Translations under genes and position numbers: made by a program
The notes under the pieces: generated by a model
The model's input: only the letters and a program-made list of their open reading frames with translations
What the model was told of the DNA's origin: nothing
Databases searched by the model: none
Assembly: GCF_001194135.2 (NCBI RefSeq)
Contig: NC_068982.1
Span: forward strand, 175,804,440 to 175,852,395
Reading direction: 5' to 3'
From: Octopus bimaculoides
Lineage: Eukaryota
DNA: 47,956 bases
Shown: piece after piece, positions 3,926 through 47,855 of the stretch
Layout of the letters: every line of letters begins with the position of its first letter
Position numbering within the stretch: position 1 is the stretch's first letter

Positions 3926-4769
3926 ATTTTGTATGTGGCAGATGCACATGAGCAATAAACACTGAAAATGTGCAGAAAACAACTTCTGCCACATTCCAGA
4001 GAGAAAAACTAGAAGTAGTTGATAGCTTCCGTTACCTAGGTGACCAAGTCAGTAGCAGGAGAGCGTGCGCTGAAAGTGTAGCTGCTAGCATAAGAATAGC
4101 CTGGGCAAAGTTCAGAGAGCTTTTACCTCTGCCTCTCGCTCAGAGTAAAAGGCAGACTGTATGACGCACGTGTACAAACAGCCATGCTACATGGCAGTGA
4201 AACACGGGCCGTGACTGCTGAAGATATGCGTAAGCTCGCAAGAAATGAAGCCAGTAAGCTCCGATGGATGTGCAATGTCAGTGTGCAGTACCTTGAGAGG
4301 AAAGTTGGACCTAAGAAGCATCAGTTGTGGTGTGCAAGAGAGACGATTGAGCTGGTATGGTCATGTGGCAAGATTGGATGAGGATAGCTGTGTGAAAAAG
4401 TGCCACACCCTAGCGGTTGAGGGAACCTGTGGAAAAGGTAGACCCAGGAAGACCTGGGATGAGGTGGTGAAGCATGACCTTCGAACATTGGGTTTCACCA
4501 AGGCAATGACTAGTGACCGAGACCTTTGGAAATATGCTGTGCTTGAGAAGACCCGGCAAGCCAAGTGAGACCATAATCTGTGGCCTCTGCCAGGGGTGTA
4601 GCCAGCTCACTTATTCGTACCGTTACTTCATTAGACACTAAACTCTGCTTGCGAAGACCTGTCAAGGCAAGTGAAATCGAAATCGGACCAGATTCAACGA
4701 CTCCCATGCCAACCTTTCCTTCATTGGACACTAAATTGCTTGTGAAGACCTGTTGGGGTAAGTAAAATC
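3926..4769 (+). mobile_element. RTE-clade LINE, 3' part of ORF2 (frameshifted) plus start of 3' UTR
   Basis: Frames give LEVVDSFRYLGDQV...IRIAWAKFRELLPL, MLHGSETRAVT...LRWMCNVS and RRLSWYGHVARLDEDSCVKKC...GKGRPRKTWDEVVKHDL. These are post-RT motifs typical of RTE ORF2, ending at the stop at 4568. Confidence 0.9.
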
Positions 4770-4817: not shown

Positions 4818-5735
4818 CACGTTTGAAAACATCCACATCCACCCCATGAAGGCTCCTCAGATGCCTTGGCAGACAATTAAATAGCTGTTGATGTTATCAA
4901 TAGTTGCCATTTCACAATGTGTGTCTTCGGGGTCAAAGAACCTATCTGGCACAGTCACTTGTAGCTTCCCCAGAGGTATGCTGAAAGCACTCTTGTATTG
5001 TGCATTCAGTAATTCACTGATCCTCTGGGGTCCGCAGTTAGTGAGCTGTTGTCATCTAGTAGAGGCCCTATTTTGTAACGCTCTGAAGCAGATTCTCTCG
5101 CATATCTATAGAAGGCTTTAGGGTCCGCTTTAAAGTTTCTGATAGCCGTAGCTTCCTTTTCTGCTCTTTAATTTTCATGGGAAAGTTTGAGTGCGTTTTC
5201 AATCTCAAGCAAGGTGCATTTGAGGTGGATTCGTTTGAAATCTTTTAGATGTCCATTTAGACAGTTTGAGATTTTTGCTCTTCATCTCACTAGTACCCTC
5301 CTATCCCTGGGTATTATATCTTTTTCTTCACCCGTTGATTTGGTGTTCTCTTTGGAGTAAACTTACTTCAGGTATCATATATGGTTGCCATGAAGTTCTG
5401 TAGTTTCATGTCGATGCTTTCCCCAGAGAGGATGGTGGACCAGTTACATTTCAGGACCTGTTCCTCAATGCCCTTCCAGTCAGCTTTGTGGAAATTCAGG
5501 CTAAAGATGAGATGAGCGTTTCTAGTATCTTGTATGTCCATGGTCTTTTGTGGTCCATACAACATTAGTTCTATTAAATTATGGTCCGAAAAAAGCGTTG
5601 GTGTCACTTTCACATCTTGTATGAGTGCCAAGCTGTTTGTGAAACATAGGTACAGAATATTCTTTCCCCTTGTGGAGTGATGCACCATCTACTCCATAAA
5701 GAGTGCGTCAGTGAAGTCAAGCAAAGACTCTGCAT
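4770..5735 (-). mobile_element. CR1-clade LINE relic: endonuclease end plus linker joined to the ORF2 C-terminus (RT domain deleted)
   Basis: Minus frames give TRGKNILYLCFTN...FSDHNLI...NFHKADW (end of APE domain), FYRYAREK...IGPLLDDNSSLTADPQRISELLNAQYKSAFS (linker), then QLFNCLPRHLRSLHGVDVDVFKRELDLWLTEI (ORF2 C-terminus, compare 8770-8870). Confidence 0.8.
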
Positions 5736-7937: not shown

Positions 7938-8290
7938 TTTCTACTATAGGTACAAGGTCTGAAATCTGTAGCAAGGGGCCAGTCGATTATATCGACCCCA
8001 ATACACAACTGGTACTAATTTTATTGACCCCGAAAAGATAAAAGGCAAAATCGACCTCGGTGGAATTTGAACTCAGAACGTAAAAACGGACGAAATGCCG
8101 CTAAGCATTTTGCCCGGCGTGTTAACGATTCTGCCAGCTCGCTGCAATTTTATGTTCGGTTATAATAGTTTCAAATTTTGGCACAAGACTAGCAAATTTT
8201 GGGGAGGGACTGAGTCGATTTAATCGACCCGGGCGGCATTTGAACTCAGAACATAACGTTGGAAGAAATGATTCTGCCAGCTCGCCACCT
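7938..8290 (-). mobile_element. Two tandem SINE family B copies (second internally deleted)
   Basis: Reverse complement of ...ttctgagttcaaattccaccgaggtcgattttgccttttatcttttcggggtcaataaaattagtaccag... at 7938-8145 and a shorter copy at 8165-8290. Confidence 0.85.
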
Positions 8291-8369
8291 TATGTTCAGT
8301 TATAATGAAAACAATTTTACATTAATCTGATGGGTTGCTCAATATTTTTATTCTCTACAGTACAAATTT

Positions 8370-8455
8370 ATTATTTTTAAACAATAAACAGTCTGACGAT
8401 GGCATAGATGGCCGAAACTTCGAAGTCACTGTCAACAATATTGTTTAAGAATAAT
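8370..8455 (+). ncRNA. Type I hammerhead ribozyme motif
   Basis: Stem I ACAGU(8388-92)/ACUGU(8428-32). Core CUGACGA (8393-99), then an extra U (8400). Stem II GGC/GCC with 7-nt loop. GAAAC (8414-18). Palindromic stem III ACUUCGAAGU. Cleavage triplet GUC (8425-27). Distal stem I is 17 bp (8370-86/8439-55, one G-U) beyond a 1x6 internal loop. Confidence 0.8.
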
Positions 8456-8475
8456 ACAGACAGATCGATCAGACT

Positions 8476-9022
8476 GACAAACATACGGTGGCGGAACTTG
8501 AGGCAATCCAGTACCACTACACAAAGAAAATTGAATCGGTGAAACAGATGAGCTATTAGGAGAGGCTAAAAGAATTGAAGCTCCATGTCCTAGAGAAAAG
8601 ACGTGAAAAACATGCAGTGATATACATGAGAAGATCCTGGAAGGTTTTGCTCCCAACTTTGAAACTTTCAAGCTATCCCAACCACCGAACAGGACACTGT
8701 GTAGTACTAAAGATCCTGTCTTCATCTAGAATAAGGACTCAGTACTGTGATAGTTAAGGTTTCAAGGGTCCACAACTGTTCACAATTCTGTCAAACAACA
8801 TCAGAGATTTGCGAGGTGTAGATGTGAAGGTTTTCAAAGAGCGTCTGGACAAATTTTAATCTGAGATATCAGATCAATTCGCATCGGGACAGGAGGCACA
8901 ATCAAGAGCAGCTATGTCCAACTCGCTACCTCACCAGAAGCAATACAGAACAGAAACCCAATCACACTAAAAGGTGGTGCCCCAGCGTGGCCTCAGCCTC
9001 TGGCTGAAACCAGTAAAAGATA
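8476..9022 (+). mobile_element. CR1-clade LINE 3' end (ORF2 C-terminus, 3' UTR, tail)
   Basis: LEAIQYHYTKKIESVKQMSY*ERLKELKLHVLEKRR and NNIRDLRGVDVKVFKERLDKF; ends ggtgccccagcgtggcctcagcctctggctgaaaccagtaaaaga then (AT)n. Confidence 0.85.
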
Positions 9023-9239: not shown

Positions 9240-9485
9240 AGCCTTTTCTGTTTGGTTTCCTGTCTTGTTTTTTTGTCCGCCACTACATTCCTTTTAAGAC
9301 TGACACATGTACGCTACTTTTACGAGTTGGTTTTAAAAATCAGATCCACCCTAATCTTATCCAAAAATGTTGATTGACTGATTTTATATTTTCAACTGTT
9401 TCTAGATTTTGTCTATTGGTGGATAATCTCATTTGTTCGAATTTCATGTGTGCGCGTGTGTATATGTTTATATACATATACAAAC

Positions 9486-9530
<45 letters not shown>

Positions 9531-10850
9531 GTATATAAACATATACACACGCGCACACATGAAATTGGAACAAATGAGATTATCCACCAATAGACAAAAT
9601 CTAGAAACAGTTGAAAATATAAAATTAGTCAATCAACATTTTTGGATAAGATTAGGGTGGATCTGATTTTTAAAACCAACTCGTAAAAGTAGCGTACATG
9701 TGTCAGTCTTATAAGACTGCCTCAGCGGAGCAAATCTACTCAGCAATTTATAGAGAAATAGAAAAGTGTGAAGCTGATTACGAGTATTAACAATATGGTT
9801 CCGATGAACTGAGATTATCCGAGCAATTTGAAAACAAAGTCTCGCTCAACCTTATTAAAATATAAAAAAGCAACAGCGATAATTTCAGTGATATTGGTTA
9901 ATGGAAATGGGACCTTTAAAGGTCTGTAACGTTTATATTATAAATTTCTTCCCCACCCCAAATGGTCGTGATTTTGGTAATTAGCTTGGGAAACCACAAC
10001 TGTATAAATTTTCAATAAAATCGAGGCAAAAGTATAAAGCCAAAAGATCCTCCAAAATGTTTGGGATAATATGGAAAATAAAGATTAAAGTGAATCCAAT
10101 TTTTTAAAACTAACTACTGGGTAAAAGCAACGGACATCATAATGTTCTAGTTCGGAAAAGCAGGTGAAATAACCTCGTAATTTAAATTCATTCAATATAG
10201 AATGCAATGGACAGTATGCGTGATTTTTTGGCAAGGTAGTGATAACTCCGGACATGTTTTTATATTATTAGACTTCATCATCAAAGCATATTCTATTGTT
10301 GGTGCCAGATCTAAGAATAACTAGAGAAGATATAGGATCTTCGTCAATTAACACTGATAACTTAAAAGTATTTTTCTTTTGGGTAGTCACAAGTTTCAAA
10401 GAAAGGTAGAGGAATAAAAAAAAAAATGTAAAATGTGAGAACACGGGGACTCAAATTTTAAACTCCTCTCGTTACATATTCTATATATACTTTATGTATG
10501 GCACCGATGAGCAGAAATAGCTCATTTCGAGACGATCCAGCTAGTTGGGCTTTGAAGTATAGACTTTTTAAAAACTCTCTACGTCTTTGAAGGGATCTTT
10601 TTTGGATGAAATACGGTAGCCTAAAAGCGTTTAACAACATACATTAAGTATGTAACATTGATAATATATTTTCTATATTTAATCTTGACATTGTTTTAAC
10701 ATGTAAAGAAATAAAATAAGCTATTTAAAAAGAAAAATATACATGAAGAAGATATAAATCTTCGCAAGCTCTGATATATGTACCCAAGCATTCATGCATG
10801 TTGATAATGAACATCGAATTCTTTTCCCTCTTCTTTGAGCCTGTAAAGAA
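9240..10850 (+). pseudogene. Possible hAT-family transposase relic, interrupted by the fold-back element
   Basis: Frame CFFVRHYIPF|KTASAEQIYSAIYREIEKC...QYGSDE resembles the hAT (T)AE.I..AI...GSDG segment; later DLFWMKYGSLK resembles the FW motif before the dimerisation domain. Many stops; by-eye similarity only. Confidence 0.35.
9295..9719. repeat. Fold-back element: 184-bp inverted arms (2 mismatches) around an (AT)n-rich spacer; MITE-like
   Basis: Arms 9297-9480 and 9526-9709; TA on both outer sides; TAAGACTG directly repeated at 9295-9302 and 9712-9719. Confidence 0.9.
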
Positions 10851-11324
10851 ATTAAAGCTCATCTTTGCAGAAGATAATGTTGAAAACACAAGGGTAATTT
10901 CGTTTTAATTTTCCTTCCATTAATGTGTTTCAAATTTATTGACATTATATTTTGATGTATATATCAAAATCTGTACAATAAATAATTTTTTTCTGAAATG
11001 TCCACGTTTCGAGTTAATCCAAACGCAGATTTTTCAAGACTTAATTTAGATTTACTTGCTCGTCTTCGACTTTTTCTTTAATGTACACTGACTATCTGGC
11101 GCTAACATTGAATTCTGAAGGAGCAGCAGATGTTGTAAAGTCATGTAAGCCGTAAGTACCAGGCCACAAATGTTGCAGTTCGATAATTACCTGTCTACCG
11201 CGAGCAGCACTGCTTCTTTGTATCAAGACAACGTTCGCAATATTACGGTGTCTGTACGTCTATAACATAGACACACGGACGTCAACAAATAAATGCATGC
11301 ATGCATACATACATACATACATAC

Positions 11325-17269: not shown

Positions 17270-17600
17270 TCATCATCATTGTTTAACGTCCGTTTTCCAT
17301 GCTGGCATGGGTTGAACAGTTTGACTGAGCCGTAGACTGTACCAGGCTCCAGTCTGATCTGGCAAGTTTTCTACAGCTGGATGCCCTTCCTAACGCCAAC
17401 CACTCCAAGAGTGTAGTGGGCACTTTTTACATGTCACAGGCATGGGAGCCAGTCAGGTGGCACTGGCATCGACCACGTTCATATGGTGCTTTTTACATGT
17501 CACTGGCACGGGAGCCAGTTGGGAGACACTGGCATCGACCATGTTCGGATGGTGCTTTTTACATGTCACCAGCATGTCACCGGCACTGGCTAATGATGGG
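17270..17600 (-). mobile_element. RTE LINE 3' UTR fragment with 66-bp minisatellite units
   Basis: catcattgtttaacgtcc tail (reverse complement of the (GAT)n end); units start at 17420, 17486 and 17552. Confidence 0.8.
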
Positions 17601-29198: not shown

Positions 29199-29624
29199 NN
29201 NNNNNNNNNNNNNNNNNNNNNNNNNNNNNNNNNNNNNNNNNNNNNNNNNNNNNNNNNNNNNNNNNNNNNNNNNNNNNNNNNNNNNNNNNNNNNNNNNNNN
29301 NNNNNNNNNNNNNNNNNNNNNNNNNNNNNNNNNNNNNNNNNNNNNNNNNNNNNNNNNNNNNNNNNNNNNNNNNNNNNNNNNNNNNNNNNNNNNNNNNNNN
29401 NNNNNNNNNNNNNNNNNNNNNNNNAAAACGGCCACGCTCGAAATGGTGTCTTTTATGTGCCACCCGCACAAGCCAGTCCAGGGGCACTGGCAACGATCTC
29501 GCTCGAAAATCCTACAGGAGCCAGTCAGGCGGTACTGGCAACGGCCACGCTCAAAATGGTGCATCTCATGTGCCACCCGCACAAGAACCAGTCCAGGGGC
29601 ACTGGCAACGATCTTACTTGGCTT

Positions 29625-29662
<38 letters not shown>

Positions 29663-29820
29663 CAGGCATTTTTTCGGGTTCCATCTACCAAATCTACTCA
29701 CAAGGCTTTGGTCAGCCCAATGCTATAGTGGAAGATATCTGTCCAAGGTGCCATGCAGTGGGACTGAACCCAGAACCATGTGGTAGGGAAGCAAGTTTCT
29801 TACCATACAGCCACTCCTTG
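28990..29820 (-). mobile_element. SINE family A split at its internal (AT)n by a gap and an RTE 3' UTR fragment
   Basis: Body and tail at 28990-29160, head at 29660-29820, same strand and order as 17875-18254. Confidence 0.8.
29425..29625 (-). mobile_element. RTE 3' UTR minisatellite fragment (113-bp higher-order unit)
   Basis: cggccacgctc(g/a)aaatggtg...atgtgccacccgcacaag...ccagtccaggggcactggcaacgatct repeated with period 113. Confidence 0.75.
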
Positions 29821-41430: not shown

Positions 41431-41721
41431 TCATCATCATCGTTTAACGTCCGCTTTCCATGCTAGCATGGGTTGGACGATTTGACTGAGGACTGGTGAA
41501 ACCGGATGGCAACACCAGGCTCCAGTCTGATTTGGCAGAGTTTCTACAGCTGGATGCCCTTCCTAACGCCAACCACTCAGAGAGTGTAGTGGGTGCTTTT
41601 ACGTGTCACCCGCACGAAAACGGCCACGCTCGAAATGGTGTCTTTTATGTGCCACCCGCACAAGCCAGTCCAGGGGCACTGGCAACGATCTCGCTCGAAA
41701 ATCCTACAGGGGCCAGTCAGG

Positions 41722-41771: not shown

Positions 41772-42063
41772 ATATTGCAAATACGTAAAATATAGGGTAG
41801 CGAGCCCCTCTAGAAACTTCACCACCAGTGGCCCAGCATGTATAAAAAGTCAATAGACAACATATTCTCAATATAAAATAGTGTACATTTAAACATAAGA
41901 GAAACTGCCTTCAACAGGCAGTTTTACACGCTAGAAGAAGTAGTTAAAACGACCAAAACCACATCTAAGAGCAATTTGACTACTTCTAGCGTGTAAAACT
42001 GCCTGTTGAAGGCAGTTTCTCTTGTGTTTAAATGTACACTATTTTATATATTGCAAATAGGTA
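41772..42063. repeat. Insertion bounded by 16-bp direct repeats and ending in a 75/78-bp hairpin
   Basis: atattgcaaata(c/g)gta at 41772-41787 and 42048-42063; inverted arms 41871-41948 and 41975-42049. Confidence 0.8.
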
Positions 42064-43140: not shown

Positions 43141-43569
43141 GGCTGCCTGCAAGGCTATTAATCTTAAAGTGGGAGAGACTTTTGCAAGGAGACTGAAGCA
43201 GAGCTACATGGCTACTCACAGGTAGAAGAGAGGGTGGAATAACCATGTGGAGCTGGAAAAAGAGTAAATAATGGTGATGTGGTGTCCAGGTGGCCCCTCA
43301 AGGTATGAAGTGAGTAGGGATACAGGAATTAGGAGCGTGGGAAAGTGGGTGGCGTTTTGGCAAGAGATGGGAGGAATGGGTGAGGGGAAAAGAGGTAGGC
43401 AATAACTAATGATTGGGTAGGGTTGAAGGCTGGAAGTAGTGAATTGTGGATAAGGGGTGGGAGATGACCAATGATGCATGTGGTTGGAGGATGCAGTAGG
43501 AAACAGCAGGACACAATGATGACAGAGTAGACAGGTGAAGGCTGATGGAGAGATGACATGATTGGGACT

Positions 43570-43935
43570 GAGAGCGTCACGTTCCTGGCACTTGTGCCGG
43601 TGGCACGTGAAAAGTCATTTGGGCGAGATCGTTGCCAGTGCCGCTGAATTGGCTCCTGTGCAGGTGGCATGTAAAGTACACCATTTAGAGCGTGGCCGTT
43701 GCCAGTTCCGCCCGACTGGCCTTCGTGCCGGTGGCACGTAAAAGCACCCACTACACTCTCTGAATGGTTGGCATTAGGAAGGGCATCCAGCTGTAGAAGC
43801 TCTGCCGAATCAGATTGGAGCCTGGTGTAGCCATCTGGTTTGCCAGTCCTCAGTTAAATTGTCCAACCCATGCTAGTATGGAAAGCGGACGTTAAACGAT
43901 GATGATAATGATGATAATGATGGTGGTGGTGATGA
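43570..43935 (+). mobile_element. RTE 3' UTR fragment with minisatellite units and (GAT)n tail
   Basis: gtggcacgtaaaagcacccactacactc...ggaaagcggacgttaaacgatgatgat. Confidence 0.85.
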
Positions 43936-46382: not shown

Positions 46383-47290
46383 GACCATTGATAAGATGAA
46401 CTTGAACTCAGCAATGAACCCTGATGAGTTTCCAGGGATTCTTTTAAAGACATGCACAAAATCCCTACAGACATTCTTCCAAAGCTTTCTTACAGGTGGC
46501 AAACTTCCCCAAATGAAAAAGAAGTCCTATCCATAGAAGAGAAAGCAGAGCAGATGCTAAAAATTACAGTGAGGAGACAGAAAATACTGTCAGAACGAAA
46601 CTGACCAAAGTTCCTAGAAGAAAATTACTTGCTCACTGACACACAGCATAGCTTCTCTCCAGGATAGCTTCTCTCACACAGCTACTACAGCATTATAACT
46701 GGGTACACAAACAGCAGCCCTCTCGTTTAAATTTGAATGTGATATATCTCAACTCTGCAAAGGCCTTCCATAAAGTTGATTACAGAAGGATATATTACAT
46801 AGTAGGAAAACTAGGGGAGTGATTGCACAACTTTTTTTAAAAGGTAGGATTCGGACAGTTGCAGATAGCTGTGCTCTCTTCATGGAGAATACTATTCTTA
46901 GAAGAATCCTTCATGGAAACTGTATCGGGACCACTATTGTTTCTCAGACATACCCTCATTCACACAGACAGCCATTCACACCAGGTACACAGATGGCATA
47001 AAAGTAAGACAGGCAGTTGAGATGATAATACAAAACTATGGAAAGACCAAGGTGTAATGCAAAAGTGAAGAAAACAACATGCAGTCCAATAATGAAAGAT
47101 TTCAAGCACTCTACTATTGGCCCACAAACAGATCGCAATCAGAAAACAGAAGACCAAGGGGTATTGCAACCCTGGAGTCACAATCAGATGGTGATCTGGG
47201 AATCCACATGAGTAATGACGCATTATTTCATGTGTTTATTACCAAGATGGGAATAGTGTGCAGGTAACTGGGTGGTTGGCTTTTGAAATC
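46381..47290 (+). mobile_element. CR1-clade LINE RT-domain relic, heavily decayed
   Basis: TIDKMNLNSAMNPDEFPGILLKTC, FHKVDY, GTVSGPLLFL and DLGIHMSND resemble the CR1 RT motifs SAPGPDG, FDKVDH, QGTVLGPLLFL and DLGV. Confidence 0.7.
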
Positions 47291-47855
47291 AGCCACATTT
47301 GTTCTCTGTTACCTGAATTGCTATTCCCAGTTATGACTGTCACATGGCATCAAACACACTGTGGAGCTAGATGCAACACAATGCTATTACACCAAGTAGA
47401 TGGTCTTGGTGCAACAGATGACCTACTGGAAGAGGTTAAAAGGTCTGGAGTTCATATCCCTAGGGTGATGATGTGAAATATATGCAGTGATATAGATACA
47501 TGTGTGTGTGTGTAACAGTACATGGTTGTTGTAAAAGAGTATCACCGTCATACAGGCAGTGCCATTCATTTCTAATATTCTACCAAACTATGTCTGCCAC
47601 TGGGGAAATATTACCATGCTTGGAAACAGGTGAGAGTTGGTTACAGGAGAGGCATCCAGTCATTGAACTTTATGCCATCCGACTCATGTAAGCATGGACA
47701 CAATATGTGGCCTGTGTGTTTTCTGTACTCTGTTTATCATTTTGTCCACGTTTTTTTTTGCAACGTCCTGTACCCAGATATGCATCTATATATACATGTA
47801 GATGTAGGTATGTACATACATGTACGTATATATGCATATACTCATATATTATTTG

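Follow-up and report, generated by a model that had tools for sequence, protein, structure and literature searches.

A lone hammerhead motif of Penelope-like element and retrozyme character, probably a solo relic, in repeat-rich octopus DNA

A complete type I hammerhead motif of 88 bases was read directly from the sequence at positions 8369-8456 (+) of the window, the 47,956-nt stretch of Octopus bimaculoides DNA analysed here, which is made up of repeat-rich eukaryotic DNA with assembly gaps. The motif is non-random, matches the hammerheads of Penelope-like elements (PLEs) and retrozymes in its architecture, is predicted to prefer a dimeric form, and stands isolated in the window. It is a lone copy of a well-known class and no novel ribozyme type, and we consider it probable that it is the solo relic, about 150 bp long, of a PLE terminus or of a PLE-derived retrozyme-like element lying between a SINE and a 5′-truncated CR1-like LINE. 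We infer that the relic arose by retrotransposition from a parent family of this kind and has no function at the locus, where the lone copy is probably inert. An earlier note on this DNA had described an intact-looking type I hammerhead of the PLE or retrozyme kind, belonging to a known class, and the architecture laid out here agrees with that description. The motif and its borders consist of the following features:

8310..8368 (+): AT-rich stretch preceding the hairpin and presumably belonging to the same hammerhead-bearing fragment; SINE homology ends at about 8306-8310 and the 5′ boundary is uncertain
8369..8386 (+): outer helix I extension, 5′ arm, 18 bp with one G.U (8376/8449), kept in the minimum-free-energy fold
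8387 (+): single unpaired A that makes up the short (5′) strand of the helix I internal loop (1x6), read from the sequence
8388..8392 (+): helix I inner 5′ strand ACAGU (positions 2.5-2.1), from the sequence and the descriptor match
8393..8399 (+): core box C3 U4 G5 A6 C7 G8 A9 = CUGACGA, which both covariance models align with their core
8400 (+): extra U between A9 and G10.1, read from the sequence
8401..8413 (+): helix II, GGC 8401-8403 / GCC 8411-8413, three G-C pairs including G10.1-C11.1 (G8401-C8413), from the sequence and the descriptor match
8414..8416 (+): core G12 A13 A14 (GAA), read from the sequence
8417..8426 (+): helix III ACUUCGAAGU (A15.1...U16.1), a perfect 10-nt palindrome, read from the sequence
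8427 (+): C17, with the predicted scissile bond at 8427/8428 according to standard hammerhead numbering
8428..8432 (+): helix I inner 3′ strand ACUGU (positions 1.1-1.5), forming 5 bp with ACAGU, from the sequence and the descriptor match
8433..8438 (+): CAACAA, forming the longer (3′) strand of the internal loop within helix I; a candidate tertiary partner of loop 2
8439..8456 (+): outer helix I extension, 3′ arm, from the sequence, folding and the flank-pairing test
8457..8470 (+): junction zone from the hairpin to the start of the CR1-like LINE fragment, assignable to neither element by the limits of LINE homology

The type I hammerhead core (C3 U4 G5 A6 N7 G8 A9 / G12 A13 A14 / A15.1-U16.1 / H17) is present throughout, and three helices surround it, of which helix I leads into both the 5′ and the 3′ flank, as in type I. 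Direct reading (CUGACGA at 8393-8399, GAA at 8414-8416 and C8427) confirmed the earlier claim that all catalytic-core positions are found on the + strand, and the sequence likewise upheld a stem II of three G-C pairs closed by the loop AUAGAUG and a stem III that is a perfect 10-nt palindrome. For stem I, the 5 bp, the 1x6 internal loop and the single G-U stood as described, but the outer stem has 18 bp and not 17 bp. The helix II loop spans 7 nt (8404-8410), and helix III can be read as a hairpin of 3 bp with a UCGA loop or, in a dimer, as 10 bp. A9, the extra U and G10.1 together form an AUG (8399-8401) that is followed by GCA UAG and by a second in-frame AUG at 8408, giving the reading frame MA*MAETSKS with a stop two codons into the AUG frame. 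An AATAAA hexamer at 8383-8388 (+), located 5 bases upstream of the core, covers the inner end of the outer-stem 5′ arm and the helix I internal loop; the surroundings are AT-rich, and the hexamer may be meaningless.

Both strands of the window were scanned with our own RNAmotif-like descriptor, and the motif was the single site found. The loose form of the descriptor (helix I of at least 4 bp, helix II of at least 3 bp, 0-1 extra nucleotide, and helix III either palindromic or of 2 bp) gave 0.018 matches per first-order Markov-shuffled window, and the strict form, which adds a helix I of at least 5 bp and the G10.1-C11.1 pair, gave no match in 2,600 shuffled windows. As an empirical control, the pattern CTGANGA-N(8-30)-GAAACTTCGAAGTC, i.e., the core plus the exact palindrome, was searched for in sequence databases. 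The results showed 24 matches in 596 Gb of prokaryotic genomes, as against about 25 expected by chance, together with 21 matches in JGI metagenomes and none in IMG/VR. Not one of these 45 prokaryotic and metagenome matches had a helix I of at least 4 bp plus a helix II of at least 3 bp, and the longest helix I among them was 3 bp. In addition, the 40-nt flanks of the motif pair with each other at -17.8 kcal/mol (z = -5.8 versus shuffles), and the 93-nt hairpin has a folding z of -5.0 versus dinucleotide shuffles. Given the shuffle, database-control and flank-pairing results, chance is a poor explanation for the motif even when a genome-wide scan is allowed for.

The limits of SINE and LINE homology confine the hammerhead-bearing stretch to at most about 8310-8470 and mark it as alien to both of its neighbours. 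Upstream, a tRNA-type SINE, with further copies elsewhere across the window, is present twice at 7950-8310. Downstream, from about 8470 to 9020 (+), lies the 3′ end of a CR1-like LINE, 5′-truncated and carrying stops and a microsatellite tail, whose homology to a second LINE copy at about 46700-47497 starts at about 8470-8478. The motif was ruled out as a part of the adjacent LINE, since LINE homology begins only at this point, and as a part of the upstream SINE, since the SINE copies align only to about 8306-8310. A template-switch chimera, in which a hammerhead-cleaved RNA is joined to the LINE 5′ end, was ruled out as well: it would place the junction at the cleavage site, whereas the junction is found about 29-43 nt further downstream. 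The GC content of 8310-8470 is 0.30.

Within the window there was no second copy of the motif and no tandem repeat of it, and no convincing target-site duplication surrounds it. A tblastn search of the window with Poseidon_Ac and 120 diverse PLE proteins revealed no PLE coding remnant and no RT/GIY-YIG sequence, so that the window offers neither the further copies and tandem arrangement nor the RT/GIY-YIG linkage that the earlier note had raised. Beyond the window, copies of the motif were found neither in 20 kb of Octopus vulgaris nor in viral, prokaryotic and metagenome collections. Exact look-ups of the ORFs overlapping the motif returned nothing on record, and no protein with a start similar to that of the 44-aa ORF running out of the motif was present in a 5.8-billion-protein library, a miss that may count weakly against an autonomous parent. 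No gene, exon or conserved ORF is evident near the motif, the surroundings being SINE, LINE, microsatellite and assembly gaps.

Other repeats of the window have relatives in O. vulgaris. An RTE-type C-terminal ORF remnant at 4245-4568 (+) is 86% identical to an O. vulgaris predicted protein, and repeats of the window match the O. vulgaris chromosome OX597824.1 at 75-89% identity. The 20 kb of O. vulgaris around this RTE ORF (locus L053) was considered as the orthologous region and ruled out, being non-collinear, a paralogous repeat and devoid of the motif. A further retroelement ORF remnant, resembling a LINE endonuclease region, is present at 5368-5688 (-). Just downstream of the CR1-like LINE, the two arms of a 190-nt inverted repeat (9291-9480 / 9526-9715; 98% complementary) flank a (TA)n microsatellite, with 45 nt between them; the repeat may represent a foldback element or else an artefact of assembly. 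A 71-nt inverted repeat of 97% complementarity, with a 37-nt spacer (41871-41941 / 41979-42049), adjoins an assembly gap and (TA)n tracts.

Hammerheads of PLEs, which include minimal and small-palindromic-helix-III variants, are distinguished by an unpaired nucleotide between A9 and G10.1, a conserved G10.1-C11.1 pair, and a palindrome formed by 15.2-16.2 and loop 3 (PMC4209133). All three sequence features are found in the window motif (U8400; G8401-C8413; ACUUCGAAGU), and the extra nucleotide after A9, which the earlier note had described as tolerated in the CChMVd viroid hammerhead, is a published hallmark of PLE hammerheads (PMC4209133). The window motif and PLE hammerheads also share type I topology, a palindromic helix III region and predicted dimer action. 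A direct comparison was made with Poseidon_Ac, whose Repbase consensus across the unit junction reads CTGAGGA-T-GCCTGC-CATAGAT-GTGGGC-GAAAC-GTC (supplement of PMC11167929) and whose counterpart in the window is CTGACGA-T-GGC-ATAGATG-GCC-GAAAC[TTCGAA]GTC. The two have the same AUG and the same C-AUAGAU-G stretch (helix II/loop 2), whereas in the window helix II is 6 nt shorter and helix III is 6 nt longer. In Poseidon_Ac, A9-U-G10.1 is the start codon of the ORF (PMC11167929).

With Poseidon_Ac as the query, 1,709 PLE proteins were retrieved; the best 120 of these were mostly named arthropod and Anolis proteins or ENA/Logan/JGI sequences, and no cephalopod was among these 120. From the contigs of six PLE proteins (L046-L052, with RT/GIY-YIG) we extracted eight hammerheads. 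All eight contained the extra nucleotide, 7/8 had A-U-G at this place, and 3/8 showed the published U3-A8 core covariation. In the recovered contigs the AUG made by A9-U-G10.1 opens the RT-endonuclease ORF, and several PLE proteins begin with '..ETS..', which is the translation of GAA-ACN-UCN, i.e., of the hammerhead GAAAC-GUC box. The window carries the same ETS signature (MAETS), there interrupted by a stop. The A9-U-G10.1 triplet as a Penelope/Poseidon ORF-start AUG, which the earlier note had not picked up, is the most diagnostic detail of the motif. As a more general observation, in Penelope/Poseidon-type elements of unrelated sources the hammerhead supplies the start codon of the ORF and, with it, an N-terminal '..ETS..' peptide.

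The motif also departs from the PLE pattern. PLE hammerheads typically have a helix II of 6-8 bp and a helix I of 2-5 bp (PMC4209133), whereas in the window helix II has 3 bp and helix I has 5 bp plus the 18-bp extension. In the minimal hammerheads of autonomous PLEs compared here, helix II measured 6 bp and helix I 2-4 bp. Helix III of the window contains six extra palindromic nucleotides, whereas PLE minimal hammerheads are without an insertion in ACGU. Long flank pairing was absent at all six PLE loci tested (z within +/-1.5), in contrast to the z of -5.8 at the window motif, and, unlike the pLTR hammerheads of PLEs, the window motif is not followed by an RT/GIY-YIG ORF. On these features the motif is not a typical minimal hammerhead of an autonomous PLE.

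The retrozyme hammerheads for which cleavage has been tested have as helix III ACAGUACUGU in coral (a 10-nt palindrome), ACGCGCGU in mussel, and ACACGUGU and ACAUGU in axolotl, and in the tested constructs (coral Amil224, mussel Mg353, axolotl Ax353/Ax330) helices I and II measure 6 bp and 4 bp, respectively (PMC7229834). Retrozyme hammerheads and the window motif are alike in an 8-10-nt palindromic helix III, in a short helix II with a 5-7-nt loop, and in a helix I of about 6 bp (5 bp in the window) running into a highly paired flank. They differ in helix II, which has 4 bp in retrozyme hammerheads and 3 bp in the window, and in the insertion after A9, which retrozyme hammerheads lack and which is a U in the window. 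Metazoan non-LTR retrozymes are 170-400-bp tandem repeats, each with a hammerhead, with a GC content below 45-50% and highly self-paired RNA, and their expression yields linear and circular RNAs of unit length (PMC7229834). The window shares the low GC (0.30) and the strong self-pairing (hairpin z = -5.0), but holds one copy with no repeat. Under the proposal that animal retrozymes descend from PLE pLTRs, the PLE-like and the retrozyme-like resemblances are not in conflict. The parent was more likely a non-autonomous, retrozyme-like PLE derivative than a PLE of the Penelope/Poseidon type, in which case the motif would stem from the hammerhead-bearing end (the pLTR/ORF-start junction) of that element.

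The Schistosoma Sm-alpha and newt satellite hammerheads (RF00163) resemble the window motif in being type I, in having a stem I internal loop placed for contact with loop 2, and in having dimer-dependent variants with a weak helix III. Unlike these hammerheads, the window motif lies below detection at E<=10 by RF00163 and the other Rfam hammerhead models. In the giant squid genome, Rfam annotation lists 235 Hammerhead_1 loci (PMC6962438); no description of a cephalopod hammerhead family of the PLE/retrozyme-like kind was found in the literature.

Rfam release 15 returned no hammerhead match at the gathering threshold in the window, and the Rfam hammerhead models, RF00163 included, reported nothing even at E<=10 in a 301-nt or a 53-nt slice at the site. 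As a control, a permissive Rfam scan was run on six RT/GIY-YIG PLE contigs with unmistakable hammerheads at the ORF start, and no hammerhead was reported in these either. Because the same models miss bona fide PLE hammerheads, the miss at the site carries little weight; the RF00163 search put forward in the earlier note was without a match at either cutoff and is, by this control, uninformative for PLE-type motifs. The PLE branch of type I hammerheads is outside the coverage of the Rfam models.

Two covariance models were also applied to the site. Model R1 was made from the eight PLE hammerheads, with the window motif left out, and scored the site at 13.7 bits (E about 0.04), the second-best match in 96 kb, with helix III partly misaligned. 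Model R2 was made from three retrozyme hammerheads and scored the site at 13.5 bits (E about 0.085), which was top-ranked in the window with the helices correctly aligned and the U treated as an insertion. These E-values are marginal, yet consistent with membership, to which they lend weak support, and the two models are not independent since they have the core consensus in common. The best R1 match was at 10995-11045 (-) of the window (15.5 bits, E about 0.01), reading GUC-UUGAAAA-A-[19 nt]-GAAAC-GUG-GAC. This site has the U3-A8 core variant, a helix I of 3 bp, no helix II, and a G at position 17; it may represent either the decayed remains of a PLE minimal hammerhead or a coincidental match. 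The Rfam scan also produced a weak SNORD47-like match at 8255-8296 (+), inside a SINE copy (16.5 bits versus a gathering score of 50, E = 1.8), which is almost certainly due to chance.

The palindromic helix III implies dimer action. Helix III is predicted at +1.6 kcal/mol as a hairpin, whereas its self-duplex reaches -12.5 kcal/mol. When two 49-nt cores are folded together, the predicted ground state is exactly the double hammerhead, at -25.7 kcal/mol versus 2 x -9.0 kcal/mol for two monomers; helix II is intact in both copies, and helix III forms 10 bp between the two molecules. This predicted ground state lends support to the dimer action that the earlier note had associated with a palindromic stem III. 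The monomer hammerhead fold, at -18.6 kcal/mol, is 6.5 kcal/mol above the predicted minimum of -25.1 kcal/mol, and in the competing minimum-free-energy fold core nucleotides are paired with the C17 region. The prediction matches the dimer dependence shown for hammerheads of newt and axolotl and proposed for those of PLEs (PMC4209133, PMC7229834); for the latter, dimer action is predicted, in vitro activity is low, and the genomic copies are mostly solo and truncated (PMC4209133). Short-helix-III hammerheads cleave poorly as monomers (PMC7229834). Helix I (5 bp plus internal loop) and helix II (3 bp plus 7-nt loop) are each 1 bp under the canonical 6 and 4, and, since both are shorter by the same 1 bp, a contact between the helix I internal loop and loop 2 is geometrically plausible.

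In the parent element, the motif would act as a double hammerhead. Two copies, either tandem units of one transcript or units of two transcripts, would pair their ACUUCGAAGU segments into a 10-bp intermolecular helix III, after which helices I and II would dock and the RNA would be cut 3′ of C17; such cutting would trim multimeric retroelement transcripts to unit length. At the locus itself efficient cleavage is unlikely, because a solo copy can be cut at one place only and depends on a second molecule of RNA, and appreciable cleavage would require intermolecular dimerisation. The earlier expectation that the element would cut any + strand transcript crossing it did not hold up: this is unlikely for a solo copy in which the monomer fold is 6.5 kcal/mol above the minimum and the helix III hairpin is unstable, and poor cleavage of monomers has been published both for PLE hammerheads and for those with a short helix III (PMC4209133, PMC7229834).

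With one copy and no coding partner, an inert relic in which the core is intact by accident is the most likely reading. One alternative is that a hammerhead-like motif arose by chance in an AT-rich inverted repeat of another kind (a hairpin-forming repeat, for example, or the end of a MITE or a miRNA-like hairpin). Inverted repeats are plentiful in the window (56 pairs), 0.018 loose matches per 46-kb window correspond to the order of a thousand per octopus-sized genome, and neither an Rfam match nor a second motif copy is present in the window. The strict descriptor, however, was never matched in the 2,600 shuffles, and the helices were missing from all 45 real chance matches. A chance origin would also leave unexplained several features that had not been sought, namely the extra U making an AUG, G10.1-C11.1, the C-AUAGAU-G common to Poseidon_Ac and the 10-nt palindrome, as well as the exact register of helix I with the 18-bp stem, and Rfam gives no miRNA or other family at the site. 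We regard this origin as very improbable.

The intactness of the motif bears on two further readings. All core positions and 29/29 helix pairs are intact, whereas the SINE and LINE copies on either side share only 70-80% identity with their relatives and contain many stops. This would suit a young and competent copy, in which + strand transcripts would self-cleave after C8427 and an active octopus retrozyme or PLE family would make linear or circular RNAs. Consistent with such activity, 30 Penelope families have been recently active in O. vulgaris (PMC13282606), and retrozymes are strongly expressed in other molluscs (PMC7229834). A single copy, however, means one cleavage site and so no release of unit-length RNA; helix III is predicted to be unstable in the monomer (+1.6 kcal/mol), and the monomer hammerhead fold to be disfavoured by 6.5 kcal/mol. 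Moreover, PLE minimal hammerheads in vitro had no monomer activity and low dimer activity only (PMC4209133), reads ending at the hammerhead site were not seen for Poseidon_Ac (PMC11167929), and no target-site duplication marks a recent insertion, which together make a young competent copy rather improbable. The same intactness among decayed neighbours, and nothing else, speaks for an exapted host element, i.e., a hammerhead under selection that would process a host transcript, as has been proposed for intronic amniote hammerheads. This we find extremely improbable, given that the motif lies among repeats and assembly gaps, with no gene, exon or conserved ORF in evidence close by, and that a solo, dimer-dependent design suits cis-regulation poorly. 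It is unlikely, although less so, that the motif belongs to an undescribed octopus family of PLE-derived retrozyme-like elements with an intermediate hammerhead, perhaps still active. Such an intermediate form would have kept the PLE start-codon nucleotide (A9-U-G10.1 = AUG) and gained a stable bulged helix I and an extended palindromic helix III.

PLE and retrozyme hammerheads occur in thousands per animal genome, and a solo relic, if that is what the motif is, would be ordinary genome content. A complete hammerhead that is invisible to all Rfam hammerhead models implies that Rfam-based counts in cephalopods, such as the 235 of the giant squid, may be underestimates. In the motif, an AUG insertion specific to PLEs occurs together with helices I and III of retrozyme-like form, and a family with such a mix, if it exists, would bear on the proposed descent of retrozymes from PLE pLTRs; an intermediate family, if real, would be a molluscan intermediate supporting that origin. 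Both the undercounting by Rfam and the descent of retrozymes are points beyond what one copy can establish. Among the remaining repeats of the window, a 66-bp tandem repeat at 17423-17569 (2.2 copies, 88% match) has relatives at, e.g., about 29400-29800, 41500-41700 and 43400-43700, and in the O. vulgaris locus L053.
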